Source of the DNA: Scyliorhinus canicula
Lineage: Eukaryota
Reading direction: 5' to 3'
DNA: 64,000 nt
Assembly (NCBI RefSeq): GCF_902713615.1
Contig: NC_052172.1
Span: 21,775,954-21,839,953 of the forward strand
Below, piece by piece: positions 3,956-62,199 of the stretch. Every line of letters starts with the position of its first letter. Within the stretch, counting starts at the first letter, position 1. Below the pieces are notes generated by a model. The model was not told where the DNA came from. It was given only the letters and a program-made list of their open reading frames with translations, and did not search any database. The position numbers were made by a program, and so were the translations under genes.

Positions 3956-4514
3956 ATTCTTCACTGAACTGCCTGGACTGCTCTTCAGAGTTTAAAAAGT
4001 CAGACCAGGAGGATGCTATTGATCAGAGGGCTACCTGAGATTACCATGCCAATGGTGATCATCTATTGCCTGGGGCTGAAAGGGGCAGACCAGACACGGC
4101 ACCCCCCCCCCATCACAGGGTCAATCCCTCAGCCACAGCACAAGCCCACACAACCCCCCCCCCCCCCTCCTGCAGCATGACAGTGGCAGAGGGACACAAT
4201 ATGAGAGGTTGGGGGTGCCCTCCTTGTCAGTGGGGGAGGGGGGGGGGGGGGTCAGGATTTGTATTGTGGGGGAATCCAGTGTGATCTCCGCCGTGCATAA
4301 ATTTGCATGGCCAAGGACTATGAATCACACCTGGGCACCGTTCCTAGCGTCAACGCAGACCAGTCCCGATCTGCTGCTGGCACTTTCCCTTTCACATGCC
4401 AACTGGCTGGTGTTGTTCCAACACTTTCTGTCCTCTTTTCAGACATGTGACATTGGCAGAACTTCATTTCATCGATATGTTGTTAATCCTTCAATGTGTT
4501 TCTTTTGAATTTAG

Positions 4515-4603
4515 GTACTGAGAAATGGACTACTGCAGAAAAAAAGATGTTCAATAAAGCAATTTGCCTTCACAATAAAGATTTCTTTCTAATGCAGAAG
4601 ATG
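4515..4603 (+). CDS. ZNF541: ZNF541-like exon, SANT domain first half, (G)TEKWTTAEKKMFNKAICLHNKDFFLMQKM
   Basis: ttag|GT...ATG|gtaag, 89 nt; SANT W..E...F..A.....KDF motif; frame consistent with both neighbours. Confidence 0.85.
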
Positions 4604-4694
4604 GTAAGAGATAATCAAATCGCAAAGTCAGGGTATTAAAGGCAGTTAAAAACGATTCAACTGCCAAAATTGACTCTATATACAATATTGAATT

Positions 4695-40251: not shown

Positions 40252-42254
40252 TCATTGTCTGTATCTCTTTAGTGATTCGATATAATCAAAGTTTTTGTGC
40301 AAGAAGAGGATTTGGTCAATGTCCTCTGGCAGCAGAGCTGACCTGGCCTGCTCTGGGATGCTATTGGAACAGAAGAACGCGGTGGTAGCCGACACAGAGG
40401 TGGCAGGAATGGCCAGGTACTGCCTGGCCAGGTTGGCCACCACCGGGAATCGATGCTCGTTGTTTTTCCACCACTCGAAGGGGTTGGTGTTGCGTTTACG
40501 CAGGGGCTCGGCCAGGTAACTCTCCAGCTGCTGGTGAATCTCTGGCATGCGCTCAGTGGGGTCTTCGCCGAACAGGAGGTCGTACTCACACTGGCTGGGT
40601 CGGTGGCTCCCCTTGCGGTCCCGGTGCTTGCCGCCCAGCTCGTGTTCTCTGGCACTGTGCTCGTCTGAGGAGGAGCTGGATGAGTGAGACTGAGGACTGA
40701 CCACAGCACTGGACAGCATGTTCTTCACCTTATTGTGGACCTTGTCACGCGTGTCCGCACTCAGGAAGCGCAGGTCCTTGAATCGTGGATCTAAAAAGGA
40801 TGCCACAATGGCCGGACTCTCCATCATTACATCGTCATCAGGGAGGTGCCAACGTTTAGCTATCTCGGTCCTGATCTTTGCACTCACTGTCCGGACGATA
40901 CAGCCTGGGTCACCGTGGTGATGCCTGAGGGCTGTTATCACCCCATGAAGACAGGGGACCAAGGAGGACACAGAGGCATTCTGCTCCTCACTGAGGAAAG
41001 ACGATGCTACTTTCAAAGTCTTCAGGATGGGCAGTAATCCTGCAGGAGTTTCCACTGGTGATCAGAGAGGTTTTGGACAGTCAGACTCCCAGCTCGATCC
41101 TCCTCCAGCACCATGCTCACTGCCCAGCGCAGCTCCAACAGTCTCTCACACATGTCGAAGGTGCTGCTCCAGCGAGTGGCAGAGTCCATGACCAGTGCCA
41201 GCCTCTCTTTGTTCATTTCTGCCAGCTTGGCGCCCAGTTCGGCATTTGCCCGGGGGCTGTGCACAAAGTGGTTGACGATGCGTCGAGCGACGCTCAGCGT
41301 GTGCTGCACCTGCTCCACCTGCAGCCCCAGTTTGATGCACAGCTGCAGCATGCGGCCAGCGCAACAGAGACTGGACCAGCCAAAGCGCTCCTGCAGCAGG
41401 CGGGCGCTGCTCAGGAGGCCGCTCGCGCTGTCGTGCACCACGCAGCTCACCGCTTTGCAGGAGACACCAAACTCGCCGGCGACGGTGTAGAGCACCTCCC
41501 CGACATAATCTGGCGCTGGGTTGTACTGGGGGGTGGTCTTGAGAACACAGCGGGCCAAGCGCCAGCGACAGTCAATGAAATGGCCCACGATGGTCAGGTA
41601 GGTCTGTTTGCCCTGGGACGCCCAGGTATCTGTGGAGAGAGTCAGAGATGGGACTGAGTGTAGATGGTGCTCCAGCTGTAACTTGGCGATGGTGTATTTG
41701 TGTCTCAGGTTAGTGGCTAAAAGGGTGCTTGATGGTATTTTATAACTTGGCTCCAGGAAGCTAAGCAGCCTCTTAAAGCCCTCGTTATTGATGACAGAGA
41801 GAGGCTGCAAGTCCCGGAAAACCATTCCCAGAATCAGGTCACTGATCACCTCCTCTCTTTTCTCTGAGCAAGGTCTGGCGTCGTGCAGGACCAGTTGGGA
41901 GATGCTCACTGGCTTGTTCTTCTTCACTTCGGGCTCTTGCCCCATGGACTCAGAGGACGAGGACCCCTCGTCGTGGGACTGCCGGAGGTCGAGCTCACTG
42001 AGGTTGTGTTTGCGTCTCAGATGCTCACGCAAGGCTGGTCATGCTGTTGTGGTAACACAGCTGCTTCCGACAGAGGCTGCATTCCACGCAGCGCTCGTTC
42101 AGCTTCTTGAAGAACTCCCACGTCGTCTGCGAGCTTTCCTGGCAGCTCACAGGCGAGGCTCGTTTGTAGCTCAGCTCATTTCCCTTCCTCCTTCTGGAAC
42201 CCACACTCCCATCCCTGGCCAGGTGATAGGATCGCAAAACCATGGAGAGCTCGT
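40252..42254 (-). CDS. ZBED-like gene, last exon: BED finger 2, hAT RNase-H-like core and hATC dimerisation domain (two 1-nt indels as assembled)
   Basis: ttgcag|AC acceptor; WEFF...VECSLC...YHNSMTS[fs]LREHLRRKH; STDTW, VVHDS, TRWSS, FLDPRFK, WWK...FP...LARQYLAIPATS, LFLHKN; frames break at ~42033 and ~41037. Confidence 0.85.
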
Positions 42255-42384
42255 CTGCAAATAATACAAAAACATTCAGGGCACCCAGTTCATTTAATCA
42301 GACCATAACTCAGAATGTACAGCACAGAGCCAGCCCATCAGACAACAGATCTGTACTGATGTTCATGGTCAAGTCTCCTCCCTC

Positions 42385-42612
42385 GGGGCAGCACGGTGGC
42401 ACAGTGGTTAGCATTGCTGCCTATGGCACTGAGGACCCGAGTTTGAATCCCAGCCCCGGGTCACTGTCCGTGTGGAGTTTGCACATTCTCCCTGTGTTTG
42501 CGTGGGTTTCACCCCCACAACCCAAAGATGTGCAGGGTAGGTGGATTGGCCACGCTAAATTGCTCCTTAATTGGAAAAAATAATTGGGTACTCTAAATTT
42601 CTTTTTTTTTAA
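42385..42612 (+). mobile_element. HE1/V-SINE in ZBED intron
   Basis: tRNA head and V-domain. Confidence 0.85.
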
Positions 42613-42717
42613 AACTCTCCTCCCTCGACTTCTACCTCACCCTATCCTTCTATTCCTTTCCACCTCATGTGTTTATCCAGCTTACCCTTATATGTCTCAA
42701 AACTTTACCTCCAATCA

Positions 42718-43097
42718 TTCCCTGTGGGAGCGAGTCCCACATTCTCCCCACTCCCCGTGGGAGTGAGTCCCACATTCTCCCCACTCCCCGTGGGAGCGAG
42801 TCCCACATTCTCCCCACTCCCTGTGGGAGCGAGTCCCACATTCTCCCACTCCCTGTGGGAGCGAGTCCCACATTCTCCCCACTCCCCGTGGGAGTGAGTC
42901 CCACATTCTCCCCACTCCCCGTGGGAGCGAGTCCCACATTCTCCCCACATCCCCGTGGGAGCGAGTCCCACATTCTCCCCACTCCCCGTGGGAGCGAGTC
43001 CCATAGTCTCCACACTCCCCGTGGGAGCGAGTCCCACATTCTCCCCACTCCCTGTGGGAGCGAGTCCCACATTCTCCCCACTCCCTGTGGGAGCGAG
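42718..43097. repeat. 33-bp minisatellite (ctcccYgtgggagcgagtcccacattctcccca)n
   Basis: About 11.5 copies; explains the 11-aa repeat ORFs in several frames. Confidence 0.95.
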
Positions 43098-43163
43098 TAC
43101 TGACAGAGTTCATTAGCACTGGCTAATTTTGATCTAAGATTCCACACTATATTGTGACTGTAC

Positions 43164-43299
43164 CTTCAGCTAATGCAGTGCAGGATTCGGCAACCCCAGC
43201 AAAGGGGTAGATTTCCTGGTCCTCATCGGACTCCAGTTGAGCTGCACACTCTCGCAGCATCTCGGATATCCTCTTACTGCTGTGTGCCGGCAGGGTTAC
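43164..43299 (-). CDS. ZBED-like gene, internal exon VTLPAHSSKRISEMLRECAAQLESDEDQEIYPFAGVAESCTALAE(D)
   Basis: ctccctgaag|GTA...GAAG|gtacag, 136 nt, open; phase 0 in and phase 1 out match both neighbours. Confidence 0.75.
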
Positions 43300-43897
43300 C
43301 TTCAGGGAGAGAGGGATGGAACAACATTACAGTATTAGCTTTTTCGAAGCCTGTCCTGTGATGATAAGAATTTGGCTAAAGAGTCCACACATTCCCATCT
43401 CAGAGCTGGCACTGATACACGGATAAGGAAGCTCGGTGGGGGTTGGGTGGGTGTGTGTGTGGGGGGGGGGGGGGGGGGGGGGGGGGTTTGAGGTGCACTG
43501 GGAGGAGGAAAGGGATGTTGGGCGGCATTGTCATTTTTATTATTTGTTGAGCTACACGGACCAGATGTTCACAAACTCCATCCCGGGTTGGCTGAACTCA
43601 GTGGGAAACCAGCCAAGCTGCTGAAACTCGCAATAGGAGGCTGGAGAGGAGGAACCACAGTGAGGGGAGGGGGAGGGAGAGGGAAGGGGAGGGGGAGGGA
43701 GGGGAAAGGGAGGGGAGGGAGCAGTGAAAGGCACTAAAAGACAAACAACTTGTTCGTAACTCGAGCCTTTGACACAATCACAAGGAGCTCCTCACAGGTA
43801 TTTAGAAATCAATATTTCACCCTGACCCACAACTGGGGGTAATTAGGGCAGCTGGCAGTTTGAAGAAATGGTAGAATTTGAGGAGAAACTGTGAATT

Positions 43898-44245
43898 AGG
43901 GCAGCACGGTAGCATTGTGCAATTGCTTCACAGCTCCAGGGCCCCAGGTTCGATTCCGGTTTGGGTCACTGTGTGTGCGGAGTCTGCACATCCTCCCCGT
44001 ATGTGCGTGGGTTTCCTCCGGGTTCTCCGGTTTCCTCCCACAGTCCAAAGATGTGCGGTTAGGTGGATTGGCCATGCTAAATTGCCCTTAGTGTTGGGTG
44101 GGGTTACTGGGTTGTGGGGTTACTGGGTTATGGGGATAGGCTGGAGTTGTTGACCTTGGGTAGAGTACTCTTTCCATGAGCCGGCGCAGACTCGATGGGC
44201 CGAATGGCCTCCTTCTGCACTGTAAATTCTGTGAATTCTATGAAT
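43898..44245 (+). mobile_element. HE1 SINE with HER1 tail
   Basis: Ends gggccgaatggcctccttctgcactgtaaattct. Confidence 0.85.
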
Positions 44246-44310
44246 TGGGGATTGTACGTGGACAGGGTCACATCTCCTAATGTCACCTTCCAAAGGGAAG
44301 AAGAACTTAC

Positions 44311-44604
44311 AGGACTGTCTATCCCAATAAGTTGTGTGATTTTTGGAGTCCTGTCCTTGATGGTCAGAATGGCGGGGGTCCGCTCAACCCTGCTGTCTCC
44401 CTGCACCTTGTTGTGGTCAGTCAGCTCCTCTGTGAAGTGGATGCGGTGATTCCTCTCCAGGTGCAGCCGCAGCACAGTGCCACTGCCAGACGTGACCAGC
44501 TCTTTGCTGCAGATGTTGCACACGATGGTCTTATCATCCCTCCGAGTTACATATTTCCAGAGCTCACTGGCCCGGGGCATCCCCGAGCCTCCGTGACTCC
44601 GCAT
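44311..44604 (-). CDS. ZBED-like gene, first coding exon with BED finger 1
   Basis: Acceptor ttgcag at 44622; in-frame ATGs at 44604 and 44580; SELWKYV...VCNICSKEL...[12 protein letters not shown]; donor CCT|gtaagt. Confidence 0.85.
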
Positions 44605-44689
44605 CAGCTCCGGCCGGCCTGACTGCAATACAACAGGGAGATGGGTCACATCAGGTCCTCTCCAGCCTGCCACTCCCTCACCCTCCCCC

Positions 44690-47600
44690 ACCCACCATGC
44701 CTCCCCCAGCCCTCACACACCCTCCCTCCCTCCCCCACTCACCACCCCTCCATCCCTCACACCCCCCCCATCCTTCACACCCCCATCCCTCACACCCCCC
44801 ATCCCTCACAACCCCCCTCCATCCTTCACACCCCCCTCCATCCTTCACATCCCCCCAACCCTCACAACCCCTCCATCCCTCACACCCCCATCCCTCACAC
44901 CCCCCATCCCTCACAACCCCCCCCATCCTTCACATCCCCCCAACCCTCACATCCCCCTCCATCCCTCACAACCCCCCCTCCATCCTCAGACACCCCTCCA
45001 TCCCGCACACCCCCCTCCATCCTTCACATCCCCCTCCATCCCTCGCACCCCCCCAACCCTCACATCCCCCTCCATCCCTCGCATCCCCCCCATCCCTCAC
45101 ACCCCCCCATCCCTCACACCCCCCCATCCCTCACACCCCCCTATCCCTCACACCCCCCATCCCTCACAACCCCCTCTCCATCCTTCACATCCCCCCCAAC
45201 CCTCACACCCCCCCCTCCATCCCTCACCCCTCTCCATCCCTCACCCCTCTCCATCCCTCACCCCTCTCCATCCCTCAGACACCCCCCTCCATCCCTCACC
45301 CCCCTCCATCCCTCGCACGCCCCCTCCATCCCTCGCACGCCCCCTCCATCCCTCGCACCCCCCTCCATCCCTCGCACCCCCTCCATCCCTCACCCCCCTC
45401 CCTCCATCCCTCACCCCCCTCCATCCCACACCCCCCCTCCATCCCTCACACCCCCCGCTCCATCCCACCCCCCTCCATCCCTTACAGCCCCGCTCCATCC
45501 CTCACACCCTCCCCATCCCTCACACCCCCCTCCATCCCTCACAACCCCTTCCATCCCTCACACCACCCCCCCATCCCTCACACCACCCCCCCATCCCTCA
45601 CCCCTACATACCTCACCCCTCCATCCCTCATACCCCCCCATTCCCTCACACCCCCCCCCCATCCCATCCCTCACACCCCCACCCCCCACTCACTCTCTTC
45701 TCCCTCACTCACCCCCCTCCATCCCTCACACCCCCCCTCCATCCCTCACACCCCACCTCCATCCCTCACACCCCACCTCCATCCCTCACACCCCACCTCC
45801 ATCCCTCACACACCGCCCTCCATCCCTCACACCCCCCATCCCTCACACCCCCTCATTCCCTCACACCCCCTCATTCCCTCACACCCCCTCATTCCCTCAC
45901 ACCCCCCATCCCTCACACCCCCACCCCCCATCCCTCCAACCCCCCCATTCCCTCACACGCCCCCATCCCTCACACCCCCACCCCCAATCACTCACACCCC
46001 CACATCACTCACACCCCCACCCCCATCACTCACACCCCCATCCCTCACACCCCCACTCACTCTCTTCTCCTTCCCTCCATCCCACACCCCCCCTCCATCC
46101 CACCCCCTTCCATCCCACACCCCCCTCCATCCCACACCCCCCTCCATCCCACACCCCCCCTCAATCCCACACGCCCCCCCTCCATCCCCCCCCCCCCTCC
46201 ATCCCACCCCCTTTCCATCCCACACCCCCCTCCATCCCACACCCCCCCTCCATACCAACCCCCCATCCCGCACCCCCCCTCCATCCAACACCCCCCCTCC
46301 ATCCCACACACACCCCCTCCATCCCACCCCCGCTCCATCACACCCCCAGCTCCATCCCTCACTCACTCTCCCCTCCATCCCTCACTCACCCTCCCCTCCA
46401 TCCCTCACTCACCCCCCCCTCCATCCCTCACCCCCCCCCCTCACCCCTTCCATCCCTCCCCCCCTTCATCCCTCACCCCCCCTCCATCCGTCACTCCCCC
46501 CCCTCCATCCGTCACTCCCCCCTCCTCCATCCCTCACCCCCCCTCCCTCACCCCCCCTTCATCCCTCACCCCCCCTCCATCCGTCACTCCCCCCCCTCCA
46601 TCCGTCACTCCCCCCCCTCCATCCGTCACTCCCCCCCTCCATCCCTCTCACCCCCCCGTCCCTCTCACCCCCCTCCATCTTTCACCCCACTCCATCCCTC
46701 ACCCCACTCCATCCCTCACACCCCCCTCCATCCCTCACCCCCCCTCCATCCCTCATCCCTCACCCCCCCCATCCCTCACCCCCCCCCCCCTCCCCCTCAC
46801 ACACCCCCTCCATCCCTCACACCCCCCTCCATCCCCACCCCCCCCTCCATCCCTCACCCCCCCTCCATCCCCCCCCCTCCATCCATCCTTCACCCCCCTC
46901 CATCCCTCACACACCCCTCCATCCCGCACACCTCCCTCCATCCCTCACACCCCCCTCCCACCCCTCACACCCCCCTCCACCCCTCACACCCCCCTCCATT
47001 CCTCACACCCCCCCCTCCATCCCTCACACCCCTCCCCGCTCCATCCCTCACACCCCCCCTCTCCATCCCTCACACCCTCCCCCTCTCCATCCCTCACACC
47101 CTCCCCCTCTCCATCCCTCACACCCCCCCGTCTCCATCCCTCACACCCCCCCTCTCATCCCTCACACCCCCCCCCCCCTCTCCATCCCTCACACCCCCCC
47201 CTCTCCATCCCTCACACCCCCCCTCTCCATCCCTCACACCCCCCCTCTCCATCCCTCACACCCCCCCCCTCTCCGTCCCTCACACCCCCCCTCTCCATCC
47301 CGCCACCCCCCCCCTCCATCCCTCACCCCCCCCCCTCCCATCCCTCACCCCCCCCCCTCTCCATCCCTCACCCCTCTCCATCCCTCACCCCTCTCCATCC
47401 CTCACCCCTCTCCATCCCTCACCCCTCTCCATCCCTCACCCCTCTCCATCCCTCACCCCTCTCCATCCCTCACACCCCCTCACCCCCCCTCTCCATCCCT
47501 CACACAGGGAAACCCCCCTCTTCCATCCCTCACACCCCCCTTCACTCCATCCCGTCACACCCCCCCCTCTCCTCCATCACACCCACTCATCCATCCCTCA

Positions 47601-49170
47601 CAACCTCACAACCCCCCCTCTCCCATCCCTCACCCCCACCCCTCTCCATCCCTCACCCCTCTCCATCCCTCACCCCTCTCCATCCCTCACCCCTCTCCAT
47701 CCCTCACCCCCCCTCTCCATCCCTCACCCCCCCCCCTCCTCCGTCCCTCACTCCCCCCCCCTCCGTCCCTCACCCCCCCCCCTCTCCGTCCCTCACACCC
47801 CCCCTCCATCCCTCACACCACCAACCCCAATCCCCCCCTCAACACCCACCACCCCCATCCCTCACACCACCACCCCCCCATCCCTCACACCACCACCACC
47901 CCCATCCCTCACACCACACCCCCCCTCACACACACACCCCCCCTCTCCGTCCCTCACACCCCCCCTCTCCGTCCCTCACACCACCCCCCCATCCCTCACA
48001 CCACCACCCCCATCCCTCACACACACCCCCCCCTCACACACACACCCCCCCTCTCCATCCCTCACACCCCCCCCCTCCCCACACCCCCCCCTCCATCCCT
48101 CACACCCCCCTCCATCCCTCACACCCCCCCTCCATCCCTCACCCCCCCCTCCATCCCTCACACCCCCCCCCCTCCCTCACACCCCCCCCCTCCATCCCCC
48201 ACCCCCCCCTCCATCCCTCACACCCCCCCCCCATCCCTCACACTCTCCCCCCCCCATCCCTCACACCCCCCCCTCCATCCCTCACACACCCCCCTCCATC
48301 CCTCCACCCCCCCCTCCATCCCTCACACCCCCCCCTCCATCCTCACACCCCCCCCTCCGCCCTCCACCCCCCCCTCCATCCCTCACACCCCCCCCTCCAT
48401 CCCTCACACCCCCCCCATCCCTCACACCTCTCCATCCCTCACCCCCCCCTCCATCCCTCACACCCCCCCCTCCATCCCTCCACACACCCCCCCCTCCATC
48501 CCTCACACCCCCCCTCCATCCCTCACACCCCCTCTCCATCCCTCACACCCCCCCTCCATCCCTCACACCCCCCCTCCATCCCTCACACCCCCCCCCCCAC
48601 CCCCACACCCCCCCCTCCATCCCTCACCCCCCCCCCCCTCCATCCCTCACACCCCCCCCTCCATCCCTCACACCCCCCCCCCTCCATCCCTCACACACCC
48701 CCCCCTCCATCCCTCACACCCCCCCCTCCATCCCTCACACCCCCCCCCCCCCTCCATCCCTCACACCCCCCCCTCCATCCCTCCACACCCCCCCCTCCCA
48801 TCCCTCACACCCCCCCCCTCCATCCCTCACACCCCCCCTCCATCCCTCACACCCCCCCCTCCATCCCTCACACCCCCCTCCATCCCTCACCCCCCCTCCA
48901 TCCCTCACACCCCCCCTCCATCCCTCACCCCTCTCCATCCCTCACCCCCCTCCATCCCTCACACCCCCCCTCCATCCCTCACACCCCCCCCTCCATCCCT
49001 CACACCCCCCTCCATCCCTCACACCCCCCCCTCCATCCCTCACACCCCCCCCTCCATCCCTCACACCCCCCCTCCATCCCTCACACCCCCCCCCCATCCC
49101 TCACCCCTCTCTCCATCCCTCACACCCCCCCCCATCCCTCACCCCTCTCTCCATCCCTCACACCACACCC
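44690..49170. repeat. ~4.5-kb C-rich satellite, (ccatccctcacacccc)n variants, in ZBED intron 1
   Basis: Plus strand almost free of G; hundreds of degenerate units. Confidence 0.97.
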
Positions 49171-49189
49171 CCCGCATCCTGTCACTCAC

Positions 49190-49386
49190 TCTCTTCTTCC
49201 CTCCAGCCTCCCTCAGTCACTATCTCTCGGTTGTCACGGAAACGCGGCTCGAGGTTCCCGGAAGCGGCTCCGCAGCAACAGGAAGTGACGCAGATTTGGG
49301 GCCTGTCTGTATCTAAGCCCCGCCCCCGGTCTCCACGGAAACGCGGCCTGGTTCCGCTCGGAGCCTCACTCCAGCCCGGCCCGCGG
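49190..49386. promoter_or_regulatory. Bidirectional CpG-rich promoter and non-coding first exons of ZBED-like (-) and MRPS12 (+)
   Basis: Minus-strand donor |gtgagt below 49190, plus-strand donor G|gtgagt after 49386; ETS CCGGAAG 49258 and CAGGAAGTG 49279, TGACGCA 49286, GC box 49317-49327, cacggaaacgcggc twice (49235, 49334). Confidence 0.75.
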
Positions 49387-49429
49387 GTGAGTTTCCCCCG
49401 GATCCGGCCCCGTACCTCCGGGAATTATC

Positions 49430-49850
49430 CTCAGTACCTCTGGGGTTGGGTCTGGGTGGTCAGTTAGGCTCAGTACCTCTGGGGTCTGGGAGGTCAGTTA
49501 GGCTCAGTACCTCTGGGGTCTGGGAGGTCAGTTAGCCTCAGTACCCCTGGGGTTGGGTCTGGGTGGTCAGTTAGCCTCAGTACCCCTGGGGTCTGGGAGG
49601 TCAGTTAGCCTCAGTACCTCTGGGAGGTCTGTTAGCCTCAGTACCTCTGGGAGGTCAGATAGCCTCTGTACCCCTGGGGTTCGGTCTGGGTGGTCAGTTA
49701 GCCTCAGTACCCCTGGGGTTGGGTCTGGGAGGTCAGTTAGCCTCAGTACCCCTGGGGTCTGGGAGGTCAGTTAGCCTCAGTACCCCTGGGGTTGGGTCTG
49801 GGAGGTCAGTTAGCCTCAGTACCCCTGGGGTTGGGTCTGGGTGGTCAGTT
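49430..49850. repeat. 33/39-bp minisatellite (ctcagtaccYctggggt[tgggt]ctgggaggtcagttagc)n
   Basis: About 12 copies in MRPS12 intron 1. Confidence 0.9.
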
Positions 49851-49989
49851 GCTGGACCCAATGCCAATAGTTCACCAATGACTCTGGCTGCACAGAATTG
49901 GGCATGATGCCCCATCCAGTCAAGTATCATATTCGCCCTCTTTGTCCTGCTTGATCACCCTGATTGGGGCATTTGCTTGATTGGGAGGG

Positions 49990-50885
49990 GGTTAAACTCT
50001 GTCTGGGTGGGGTAAACACTGGGGTGGGGTAAACACTGGGGTGGGGTAAACACTGGGGTGGGGTAAACACTGGGGTGGGGTAAACTCTGTCTGGGTGGGG
50101 TAAACTCTGTCTGGGTGGGGTAAACACTGTCTGGGTGGGGTAAACACTGGGGTGGGGTAAACACTGGGGTGGGGTAAATACTATCTGGGGTGGGGTAAAT
50201 ACTATCTGGGGTGGGGTAAATACTATCTGGGGTGGGGTAAATACTATCTGGGGGGGGGTAAATACTGTCGGGGGGTACATACTGTCGGGGGGGGGTAAAT
50301 ACTGTCGGGGGGGTAAATACTGTCGGGGGGGGGGGTAAATACTGTCGGGGGGGTAAATACTGTCGGGGGGGTAAATACTGTCGGGGGGTAAATACTGTCG
50401 GGGGGGTAAATACTGTCGGGGGGGGTAAATACTGTCGGGGGGGGGTAAATACTGTCGGGGGGGTAAATACTGTCGGGGGGGTAAATACTGTCGGGGGGGT
50501 AAATACTGTCGGGGGGGTAAATACTGTCGGGGGGGTAAATACTGTCGGGGGGGGTAAATACTGTCGGGGGGGTAAATACTGTCGGGGGGGGGGGTAAATA
50601 CTGTCGGGGGGGTAAATACTGTCGGGGGGGTGTAAATACTGTCGGGGGGGTTTAAGTACTGTCGGGGGGGTGTAAATACTGTCGGGGGGTGTAAATACTG
50701 TCGGGGGTGTAAATACTGTCGGGGGGTGTAAATACTGTCGGGGGGGGGTAAATACTGTCGGGGGGGGGGTAAATACTGTCGGGGGGGGGGTAAATACTGT
50801 CGGGGGGGGTGTAAATACTGTCTGGGGGGGTAAATACTGTCTGGGGGGGGGGTAAATACTGTCGGGGGGGGGGGTAAATACTGAC
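49990..50885. repeat. G-rich 17-22 bp satellite (gggggtaaaYactgtc)n
   Basis: About 45 copies with an ordered shift from GTAAAC to GTAAAT variants. Confidence 0.95.
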
Positions 50886-51188: not shown

Positions 51189-51240
51189 GAAAAACCCCTC
51201 TAACTCCTACAAAAAGGGGGGCTGTAAATACCGAGGCGCT

Positions 51241-51810
51241 GGGTGGGATTTTCCGGTTGCCGACGTTGAAATCGCGTTCGGCGAAATCGGGGACAGTGCC
51301 GGTTTTTAGATGCTCCGCCCCCTCCAAAACAGTATAATCGCTGAGTAGGCCGCATGCTGCTGGGACGGCCTCAGGATATCCTCTGAGGCCCTCCCCCCGA
51401 AGCTCCGCCCCCGACGGCCCGACTTCCGAAGGCGAGTCGAGTGTACTCTCATTTTCCGGGGACTTGGCGTGGTGGCTGCGGACCGTGTCCAATGCCGCCA
51501 GTCGGGTGCAGGGAGTGCAATTCCGCTGGCGAGGGGAGGGGGGGTCTTCAGCAGGGGCTGGGGGTGGCGAAGGGGGCTTCAAGCGACACTATCTGGCAGG
51601 CCGGGTCCGTGCCCAGCCGTCGCCGTGCGCATGCGCGGCCATGGACCTGGCCATTCTGCATCCGTATCTGCAGGTAAAGACGGGGGCTTCACGTGGTGCG
51701 GCTGCTAGCCCCCCACCGGGTGGAGCATCGGTGTGAGGGCGGCACGACGTTTTGGTCAGAAGACCAGATGCTTCCTCCGGACATAGCTGCAAAATCGGAG
51801 AATCCAGCCC
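51241..51810. mobile_element. GC-rich TIR element (possibly PIF/Harbinger-type MITE)
   Basis: Imperfect TIRs gggtgggattttccg / cggagaatccagccc; similar termini at ~2879 and ~34838; TSD not clear. Confidence 0.55.
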
Positions 51811-52970: not shown

Positions 52971-53914
52971 GTGAGAGTTTTATTTGTGTCAGAATCAGAA
53001 GAGGGGCAATCAGAAGAAATGGCGGGGCTGGGAGAGGAGGGGGTGGAATAATTAGCAGGGAAGGTGATCGTGTTTGTACAAAAACTGTGTGATGTGCGGG
53101 TTGTTTTGGCAGCAACGGCGGCGAGGATTCTGCACGCAGCGAGTGGTTAGGATCGGGAATGCATTGCCAGAGAGTGGGAGGATCCAAAAGGGAACGGGAT
53201 CATTTTCTGAACAGGAAATCGGCATAGGGCTAAGGGGAGAAGGTGGGGCAGTGGCACCAGCTGATTCAGAGAGCAGCACAGAGAGGACTAAATGTGGGGG
53301 GGGGGAAAAGGCTGGCTCATCTTTCAGCTGACATAGTAGGTCAAGTGGCCTCTCTCTGTGTTGTAGACCGTTACGATTTCTATCACACGATGGGCCGAAT
53401 AGCCTCTGTTGTTCTGGAATTTAGCACTGGGTGGCTAATTGAGTGTTTTCCCCTATTTGTCAGCAAATATGCTGACTTGCTGCCTCTACCCCCTCTCTGC
53501 AGCGCTGGGAGAGCGGTGGCAAAAATGTACCCGAGCACTCAGTCCGTCCCCACAGCAGGCCTATGCTGCAGACATCGTCTGTCCAGTGCTAGGTTGGCCA
53601 GGCGACAGACCGTTGTGCTTCTCCCTAGTTGATCTCCCATTGATTGCAGAAGGACAACCCCAATCTCTGCTACAGACCCACCCACTCAGCCCCAGTCAGG
53701 ATGGTGAGTGACTTGGAGGGTGGTTCCCAAGTATCTGCAGCCCTGGTCCCTCTAGTGGTGGTAACAGTTTGGAAGGTGCTGCTGAAGGAGCCTTGGCGAG
53801 TTGCTGCAGTGCCTCTTTTAGATGGTGCACACGGCTGCCGCTGATTCTGTGCTGTAATTACAACCTGTTTGCTGACATTAAAGACACTGTGAATGTTTCT
53901 GTGCTTCCCTCCAG

Positions 53915-54351
53915 CAGCCGCAAGACTGCTCAACTCCTCCCCAGCTTCCCATCTTCAGCGGGTTTTCCCACCCAGAGTCACGCTGCCTCCTCCCGTTTCC
54001 CAGCAGAACAGCCGGACCATGGCCACCCTCCACCAGATGCACAAGATGGGCAAACCCAAGCGCGCCCCACCCAAGGTAGGCGCCACCTTCGGCCGGCCCC
54101 AGCTGAAAGGTGTGGTGCTGAAGACCATGATCCGCAAACCAAAGAAGCCCAACTCGGCCAACCGCAAGTGCGCCCGCGTGCGGCTCAGCAACGGCAAGGA
54201 AGCGATCGTCTTCATCCCCGGAGAGGGCCACAATCTCCAGGAACACAACATCGTGCTGGTGGAGGGGGGGCGAACACAGGACCTCCCGGGCGTCAAGTTA
54301 AAAGTCGTTCGGGGGAAGTACGACTGCGCTCACGTCCAAAAGAAAAAGTAA
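53915..54351 (+). CDS. MRPS12: Mitochondrial ribosomal protein S12 (uS12m), main exon
   Basis: MATLHQMH...[35 protein letters not shown]...[11 protein letters not shown]...[11 protein letters not shown]...[12 protein letters not shown]; acceptor ctccag|. Confidence 0.95.
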
Positions 54352-60888: not shown

Positions 60889-62199
60889 TCACCTGGTATC
60901 GAGTCGACGCACTCGCACCTTTTGCTTGTAATGATATTCCTTCAGGTATTCCTTCAGGGTGTTGGGAATCGGGAGGAGGTCAATCCCATCGTAGGTGGAG
61001 CAGCTGGAAATGGCAGCCCTGCAGATGTGCTGGAGACTGAACGGGAAGGTCCTGTTGATGGGGCTGGAGAGGAGTGGTTCGAAGAACATGCAGGAGTTGG
61101 GATCCTTGTAGTGCTCCAGCAGGCCGGTGACAGTGGGGGCGTGGAAGACGCTGGGGTCGTGGACATCAAAGCTGAAATTGTGGTTCCACTGCTCAATGCG
61201 TGCATGCAGGGAGCGGCTGTACCTGCGGAAGCTGACCGAGAAGAGGTAGTCCTCCTGGGCAGAGTCCCGCAGCAGGAAGGCTCCCTCTGGTTTACCCTCC
61301 AGCAGAGCCTCAGCCTGGTACCGATCCATCACCCCCCAGTAGCAAGGAAAAGTGGTCAACTCCAGGAGGTCGGGAACCAGGCAGTGGATGTAGTCGATCT
61401 GCGTGTGGGCGCGATAGCCATCTTTGATTTCCACCTGCTCTGGGGCCAGTTGGGGAGGGGGCACCTCCTCGACGGGCACACTCTCCTGTACCTGGAGCAT
61501 AGCCCGGTCATCTCCAGCCAGCTCATTCATTCCTGGCGCCAGTTTGGGCCCCAGTTTGTACAAGGGGTTAATCTGTGCTGTCACCTCAAAGGTGTGAATC
61601 TGTGCGTGGGGCGGGGGCTCGACCCCCTGCTCAATGCTGATCCGCCTTCTCTCTCTCAGACGGTCATCTTCATCCTCCACTGGCGTCCCACCAGAGGGTG
61701 CGGTATCCAGCATCGGTGGGCTCTGTGAGACGGGGGCCGTGTGCTGCTTGATCAGGTACCATTTCTGTGCTAAATCTGTGCCTTCAGGAAAGGGGCATTT
61801 ATCAAGCATCAGTTCGCTAATGTGGATCTTCCTTTTGGAGGAGGATAAGATGGCAGAATGTAGGCTGTGGGATTTAATGGGAAAACACTGGCCCACAACA
61901 TCCTGTATCCGCTGCCTCAGGGATCTGCTGTGCAGTTTGCATGCTCCAAAGTCACGGGAATCCTTCTCCCGGGTCAGATCCAGATTCTGTTTCCCCGATC
62001 TCCCGCCCGAAGGATTCTCGACATTCCCCTCCTTTTGTTCTATTCCCGAGGTGCCGGCGGAGGCCTCGGATTTGTGGGAATTTCTGTTCTTCCTTTTGCT
62101 CCGACCTTCCGCCTGATCTTCTGGGTCCCCCCGTCTGACCTTTGGCCTCACAGCCCGCTTATCCTTCTCCGGCCTCTGGTTTTCTTGTGGATCCGACAT
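60889..62199 (-). CDS. SOCS9: Suppressor of cytokine signalling, SOCS4/5 subfamily (SOCS9/SOCS5-like), 436 aa, single coding exon
   Basis: [62 protein letters not shown]2 (CYWGVMDRY...FLLRDS) and SOCS box (FSLQHICR...[10 protein letters not shown]). The family call is secure; the paralog name is from recall of the N-terminus (RPKVR). Exon acceptor ttttgcag| at 62433. Confidence 0.85.

Follow-up and report, generated by a model that had tools for sequence, protein, structure and literature searches.

A probable ancient hAT-derived host gene of the ZBED kind in the catshark Scyliorhinus canicula, with two compensating frameshifts in its assembled sequence

Introduction

When a gene resembling a domesticated transposase is broken by frameshifts, is it a working host gene, a gene that has just been lost or the remnant of a transposon? 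This question is raised by a locus in a 64,000-nucleotide (nt) stretch of the catshark Scyliorhinus canicula genome (assembly GCF_902713615.1, contig NC_052172.1, positions 21,775,954 to 21,839,953), which we call the window and whose positions serve as coordinates throughout. The gene in question occupies 40252-44604 on the minus strand and encodes two BED fingers joined to a body like that of the hAT transposases, and its last coding exon is not open as assembled. The initial annotation, made from the sequence, had described it as an intron-bearing, catalytically dead hAT transposase gene adopted by the host, not orthologous to mammalian ZBED1, ZBED4 or ZBED6 and possibly belonging to the ZBEDX lineage. 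We consider it probable that the catshark carries here its ortholog of an old single-copy host gene that arose from an Ac-type hAT transposase, and that the two frame-breaking indels are assembly errors.

The genes with which it has to be compared are placed by their neighbours: ZBED1 adjoins DHRSX, ZBED4 adjoins ALG12 and ZBED6 lies inside intron 1 of ZC3H11A (PMC3606216, Table 1). A triad of acidic residues (DDE) of unknown role is conserved across the ZBEDs (Hayward et al. 2013, PMC3606216). ZBEDX is a gene of the frog Xenopus tropicalis located upstream of LRRC61 and syntenic with C7ORF29, also called ZBED6CL, which is its truncated mammalian counterpart (PMC3606216). The zebrafish gene that has been called 'ZBEDX' is zgc:161969, encoding 630 amino acids (aa) with one BED finger (PMC9859435).

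Gene structure and domains

The coding sequence is divided among three exons of 294, 136 and 2003 nt (44604-44311, 43299-43164 and 42254-40252), bounded by canonical splice signals: GTAAGT after 44311, AG before 43299, GT after 43164 and AG before 42254. Searches by tblastn with shark orthologs recovered exactly the same three blocks, and the locus of the whale shark (Rhincodon) has an identical layout of three coding exons, collinear with those of the window. The exon structure first proposed is therefore borne out both by the splice signals and by the ortholog alignments. The description of the gene as intron-bearing holds for the catshark and the whale shark, but not as a hallmark of the family: sharks and alligator have introns, and the gar and frog orthologs consist of a single exon.

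Coding exon 1 (44311-44604, 98 codons) begins, according to the alignment of orthologs, at the ATG at 44604, with a second in-frame ATG at 44580; a start of the form M(W/R)SH is common to five of six elasmobranch orthologs. It contains BED finger 1 (44443-44568; Pfam zf-BED, E 4e-9); BED fingers are zinc fingers with ligands of the form Cx2C...Hx4H. Coding exon 2 (43164-43299, 136 nt) encodes an acidic linker that is conserved among sharks, with 64-79% identity to shark orthologs in tblastn and 79% nucleotide identity to the whale shark. The remainder of the protein is encoded by coding exon 3 (40252-42254, 2003 nt, with its stop codon at 40254-40252), which comprises BED finger 2, an RNase-H-like core with a helical insertion and the hAT dimerisation domain. 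BED finger 2 (about 42006-42120) is the weaker match to zf-BED (E 0.009) and is split by a frameshift; the hAT dimerisation domain (40291-40527) matches Pfam Dimer_Tnp_hAT with E 3e-16 over 82 of 84 profile positions. All of these features lie on the minus strand. The presence of two BED fingers, one in exon 1 and one at the start of exon 3, agrees with the initial annotation, as does the size of about 810 aa after repair, since the conceptual protein has 811 characters including an X at each of the two breaks. Two clear zf-BED matches are also found in the Heterodontus and Rhincodon orthologs. Across the family, two fingers occur in sharks and a Danio species and one in the tetrapods and gar tested.

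Orthologs, phylogeny and selection

An exhaustive HMMER search with the middle piece of exon 3, the 336-aa segment between the two frameshifts, gave 7744 matches, the best of which came from sawfish, stingrays, skates, chimaera, bichir, gar, cyprinids, bonytongue and falcons and were 660-980 aa long. When the sawfish and catshark (S. torazame) orthologs served as queries, a further five shark genera, coelacanth, a caecilian, nine frogs, alligator and many birds emerged. Intact orthologs were thus found in every group in which the initial annotation had proposed to look (shark, ray, chimaera, coelacanth, amphibian and sauropsid), and in ray-finned fishes too. Identity is 96-98% for S. torazame, 88-90% for Heterodontus and 87% for Rhincodon, and reaches 41-47% at the far end, in coelacanth, alligator, birds, frogs, gar and cyprinids. 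Most orthologs lie on a single contig per genome, and the window holds one copy. They appear in NCBI as 'E3 SUMO-protein ligase ZBED1(-like)' and in fish databases as zbed4l2 or si:dkeyp-117b8.4; we found no papers mentioning zbed4l2 or dkeyp-117b8.4. No mammalian member was present among the matches of these searches, which did not probe mammals exhaustively.

When 23 family members are placed in a maximum-likelihood tree with eight transposon-like hAT proteins as the root, the branching order is that of the species. Chimaera groups as sister to sharks and rays; on the ray-finned side the order is bichir, gar, teleosts, and on the other side it is coelacanth, amphibians and then an alligator-bird group. 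Among 125 hAT representatives, the family forms a clade with 100% support on a long stem. Twenty of the non-family representatives were looked up and proved to be sponge, tunicate, insect, teleost and unnamed metagenomic hAT proteins; ZBED1, ZBED4 and ZBED6 were not recognised among those 20.

The surroundings of the gene are also shared. In gar and alligator, it has a SNAP-domain (NAPA-like) gene in divergent orientation on one side and, downstream, an ELM2 gene in convergent orientation on the other. In the window, ELM2/SANT-like exons are found on the plus strand at 1553-1669 and 4514-4618, one of them reading GTEKWTTAEKKMFNKAICLHNKDFFLMQ, which is SANT/Myb-like; they resemble the ZNF541/TRERF1-like gene that flanks the gar and alligator orthologs and are convergent to the ZBED-like gene, in the same orientation as in those two species. 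ERH lies downstream of the ortholog in Heterodontus. No gene is called within 10 kb of the frog ortholog, which makes the frog locus uninformative on synteny. The main coding exon of MRPS12 is at 53893-54351 of the window. In the whale shark, the 10 kb upstream of the gene did not reveal MRPS12; the head-to-head pairing with MRPS12, and with it the synteny envisaged in the initial annotation, is therefore documented for the window only.

The ratio of nonsynonymous to synonymous substitution rates (dN/dS) relative to the whale shark is 0.10 at a dS of 0.63 (Nei-Gojobori, 666 codons), in agreement with the purifying selection expected of a host gene. Terminal inverted repeats, which in an active hAT element go with an 8-bp target-site duplication and multiple copies, had not been seen around the gene, and indeed no inverted repeat of at least 11 nt joins its flanks; the long inverted pairs in the region are short interspersed elements (SINEs). 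The claim of domestication is upheld because intact orthologs exist across jawed vertebrates, their tree is the species tree, neighbours are conserved and dN/dS is 0.10; no dispersed copies were seen. On these sequence comparisons, the domestication is older than the split between cartilaginous and bony vertebrates, and the gene has been kept for some ~450 million years in jawed vertebrates other than mammals.

Fold and catalytic residues

A profile of the family matches the Hermes transposase with E 1e-40 over 508 profile positions. A profile was required for this, as the middle piece searched as a single sequence against the PDB gave chance matches to designed repeat proteins only. The AlphaFold (AF2) model of the Heterodontus ortholog aligns with Hermes structures at template modelling (TM) scores of 0.66-0.71; its mean predicted local distance difference test (pLDDT) value is 73, with the core above 85. 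In this model, two well-folded BED fingers are accompanied by a disordered linker with two short helices and by a serine-rich disordered loop, and the stretch of the former catalytic Glu is modelled at low confidence. Both BED fingers, the hAT dimerisation domain and the Hermes-like fold in full have been kept, under strong purifying selection.

Aligned to Hermes, the window protein keeps the equivalents of the first catalytic Asp (STDTW, 41628-41630) and the second (VVHDS, 41430-41432), has Arg at the His position of CxxH (CAGR, 41352-41354) and has Thr at the position of the catalytic Glu (SATTAFF vs SERVFS, 40384-40386), all on the minus strand. The Cys of CxxH and the Trp of the RW motif are retained. 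The profile alignment therefore confirms what had been read by eye, namely that both Asp are present, the Glu is lost and CxxH has become CAGR. Arg for His and Thr for Glu recur in the other sharks except Heterodontus (Cys at the CxxH position), and the complete D-D-E plus CxxH set is likewise absent in four other shark genera. An active hAT transposase requires both the Glu and the His of CxxH. The earlier label 'catalytically dead' fits these residues, which would predict a protein unable to catalyse transposition in sharks.

Elsewhere in the family, different residues have been lost. At the position of the first Asp, rays and chimaera have His, whereas birds, frogs and ray-finned fishes have Glu. 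In the family alignment, the His of CxxH is kept only in chimaera, coelacanth, alligator, caecilian and one frog, and the Glu is kept in coelacanth, caecilian, frogs and bichir, with Asp or Asn in most others. The full set of D, D, E, CxxH and RW is retained in coelacanth and in the caecilian Geotrypetes, and three acidic residues are retained in most bony vertebrates.

One annotated ortholog stands apart. That of Pristis pectinata (sawfish) diverges from all others from about residue 690 (the last ~120 residues) and has no detectable hAT dimerisation domain, which looks like a frameshift in the gene model or the assembly.

Frameshifts in exon 3

As given, exon 3 is read in frame -2 from 42254 to a TGA at 42027-42025, then in frame -3 for 336 codons, and again in frame -2 from about 41037 to the stop at 40254-40252; taken literally, the open reading frame (ORF) ends after 217 aa, at the stop at 42027-42025. 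Exon 3 aligns to whale-shark DNA with 85% identity over 1999 nt, and exactly three indels separate the two sequences in ~2 kb: one in-frame indel of 3 nt and two of 1 nt that compensate each other. The first frameshift (42031-42033) is due to one extra T at about 42032, a single T having become TT, so that the window reads CTTG and the whale shark CTG; it falls within BED finger 2, with the Cys pair on one side and the His pair on the other. At the second (41036-41038), one base is missing at about 41037, the window reading GAT-TACTG and the whale shark GATCTGCTG, and the original frame is restored; the missing base may have belonged to a T run. Both sites are uninterrupted (MTSLREHL and LLQDLLPILK) in S. 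torazame, Heterodontus, Rhincodon, Heptranchias and Pristiophorus. No stop codons occur in the restored frames.

A gene long dead would show surplus replacement changes and further lesions. In a relative-rate test at the protein level, with Heterodontus and Rhincodon as outgroups, six amino-acid changes were private to the window lineage and six to the S. torazame lineage (branch lengths 0.012 vs 0.013), and dN/dS relative to the whale shark was 0.09, 0.10 and 0.11 before, between and after the frameshifts. Assuming that neutral change is about ten times faster, any inactivation would have happened, as a rough estimate, in about the final fifth of the branch to S. torazame. Given the lack of excess amino-acid change on the window lineage, it is likely that both indels are consensus errors of the assembly, and the living animal is probably making the full ~810-aa protein. 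The initial annotation had treated the indels as repairable; this stands insofar as both exist, compensate each other and fall where the orthologs are intact, but the repair is not trivial, as real lesions are the alternative to it.

If the frameshifts are real, a domesticated gene about 450 million years old would have just been inactivated, or shortened to a protein of 217 aa, in this species or individual. The shortened product would consist of BED finger 1, the linker and half of BED finger 2, with the downstream ORF yet to decay. We regard this as unlikely, though it is the most probable of the alternatives, and several observations weigh on its side or otherwise against our preferred reading. 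Both indels are present in the sequence as given, and neither an intact nor a pieced S. canicula protein was found in the protein collections searched: the search with the 336-aa middle piece turned up no independent fragment from S. canicula, and no S. canicula protein was among the matches of the searches with the sawfish and S. torazame orthologs, a pattern that would be expected if annotators had called the locus a pseudogene. Consensus errors are commonest in long homopolymers, and the two indels lie in T runs of one to three bases. Moreover, the relation to ZBED1, ZBED4 and ZBED6 is drawn from synteny and names and not from a tree containing them, and the DNA binding, dimerisation and catalytic loss discussed below are all deduced from residues and homology. 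What tells against real frameshifts is that the window branch carries no surplus of amino-acid changes (6 vs 6), that there are no stops and no other frame-breaking indels in 2 kb, and that dN/dS is just as low in the out-of-frame segment as around it; two independent lesions that compensate each other with nothing else broken would be a tight coincidence for a pseudogene.

Two further accounts have little in their favour. That the locus is a decaying copy of a hAT transposon and not a host gene is very improbable: the architecture is that of a hAT transposase and paired frameshifts are typical of dead copies, but syntenic single-copy orthologs occur across jawed vertebrates, the gene tree is the species tree, dN/dS is 0.10, the introns are conserved between catshark and whale shark and there are no terminal inverted repeats. 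Less probable still, to the point of being barely credible, is a cellular bypass of the frame changes, whether through splicing of a cryptic intron (GT at 42028, AG at 41040) or through programmed frameshifting by the ribosome, +1 at CUU-G and afterwards -1. The sequence has GTGAGC at the first site and CTCCTGCAG at the second, and CUU followed by a rare codon and a stop at the first site bears a loose resemblance to the +1 sites of Ty1 type; all orthologs, however, encode the same residues in a single unbroken frame. The cryptic intron was rejected, as at 989 nt it is not a multiple of three, is in the wrong phase, leads to an immediate stop and would delete the conserved core. Programmed frameshifting was rejected as well, since the second site lacks a slippery heptamer of the form X XXY YYZ and the orthologs use one frame. 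The frameshifts should be checked against reads before the locus is called a pseudogene.

The 5′ end and other features of the window

Upstream of the coding exons, a CpG islet of 250 bp (49165-49425, minus strand; 19 CpG in 200 nt, observed/expected 0.89) is a putative shared promoter and holds a candidate non-coding first exon, which we consider plausible from its sequence features. It has divergent GT donors near 49193 (minus strand) and near 49390 (plus strand) and a 14-nt motif repeated twice, and the putative 5′ junction would lie near 49193/44623; no conservation of the islet was found in the whale shark. The putative intron of the 5′ untranslated region (5′-UTR) is filled by a minisatellite with a 20-nt unit (44706-49164, about 228 copies, 4.4 kb; Tandem Repeats Finder), which is G-rich on the sense strand of the gene, with GC skew down to -0.97. 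Such an array might be prone to form G-quadruplexes or R-loops just downstream of the putative promoter. It also produces a spurious proline-rich ORF of 1608 aa on the plus strand.

The islet is enclosed by three different minisatellites, the other two being a 34-mer of about 11 copies (49448-49835) and an 18-mer of about 46 copies (49987-50871). A 34-nt unit related to that of 49448-49835 (GGTCAG..GCCTCA.TA.CCC.GGGGTTGG) is present in the whale-shark locus (L001, 9807-9980). There it lies just upstream of the ATG, and in the window it lies upstream of the CpG islet, in opposite orientations relative to the gene; it may represent a dispersed shark family rather than an orthologous array. Intron 2 contains another minisatellite (42719-43098, 33-nt unit, 11.5 copies; Tandem Repeats Finder). 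Many copies of one shark SINE family occur in both orientations (43924-44056, 42458-42510, 37709-37841 and others), including inside introns 1 and 2, and they account for all long inverted repeats in the region. With such SINEs and minisatellites, the DNA around the gene is vertebrate in character.

Between the ZBED-like gene and the coding exon of MRPS12 there is a larger CpG island (51200-51800, 52 CpG in 600 nt). Farther along, a single-exon intact ORF of 436 aa on the minus strand (60889-62199) contains SOCS (PF12610), SH2 and SOCS-box domains and is a gene of the SOCS4/5 type. An Rfam scan of the whole window gave no match.

Discussion

For the window, the finding mostly tidies up the annotation: a conserved host gene is really there, an ordinary member of the ZBED kind of domesticated transposases, annotated in databases and yet unstudied. 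As for its function, the residues suggest that the shark protein would have lost the ability to cut DNA, that its BED fingers may bind specific DNA sites and that the hAT domain could form a dimer or a higher oligomer. By analogy, it might then act as a regulator of transcription or chromatin in the manner of ZBED1, ZBED4 and ZBED6.

A more far-reaching proposal, which we hold only tentatively, is that the family is a separate, undescribed ZBED lineage that arose by one domestication before the cartilaginous/bony split and was lost in mammals, its active site decaying independently in each lineage. The lineage from sharks to birds is not covered in the ZBED literature searched (PMC3606216, PMC7471704 and PMC9859435). 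If the proposal is true, the ancestral proteins, and perhaps some living ones, would have long kept a metal-dependent nucleic-acid activity after the transposon stage, and cartilaginous fishes would later have shifted to a form that only binds DNA and has an additional BED finger. Since different lineages kept or lost different catalytic residues, the family offers a clean natural series in which to ask why a domesticated transposase would still need its former active site.

The family shares with ZBED1 (DREF/TRAMP), ZBED4 and ZBED6 its BED finger or fingers, its Hermes-like core with a helical insertion and its hAT dimerisation domain, and all are host genes derived from Ac-type hAT elements and held under constraint. 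They differ in locus. The catshark family is found by SNAP/NAPA and ELM2 genes and not by DHRSX, ALG12 or ZC3H11A, which fits a gene other than ZBED1, ZBED4 or ZBED6, an assignment made by synteny that agrees with the initial annotation. They also differ in the active site: the DDE triad is conserved in ZBEDs (PMC3606216), whereas in the catshark family it erodes by lineage and sharks have no Glu. The family may be either an old paralog of one of ZBED1, ZBED4 and ZBED6 or a separate domestication.

ZBEDX of X. tropicalis resembles the catshark gene in being non-mammalian, in having two BED fingers and in having no known function. It is defined, however, by its position upstream of LRRC61, and the catshark family lies elsewhere, among different neighbours, with no Xenopus protein among the matches; the suggested membership of the ZBEDX lineage is accordingly not sustained. 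The zebrafish 'ZBEDX', zgc:161969, with its 630 aa and single BED finger, is likewise a gene distinct from this family. The closest relatives are instead the genes annotated as zbed4l2, si:dkeyp-117b8.4 or ZBED1-like, which are orthologs with the same domain order, fall in one clade and share the ELM2 neighbour. Among them, the S. torazame protein has CAGR and SATTAFF as in the window and is 96-98% identical over exon 3; what sets S. canicula apart from such genes is that its ORF in the assembly carries two 1-nt indels. With the Hermes transposase of Musca domestica (PDB 2BW3, 4D1Q and 8EDG), finally, the window protein has in common the fold, the first two Asp, the Cys of CxxH and the Trp of RW. 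It differs in having Arg for His, Thr for Glu and an extra N-terminal BED finger with its linker, and, unlike Hermes, it is encoded by a vertically inherited gene without transposon ends.

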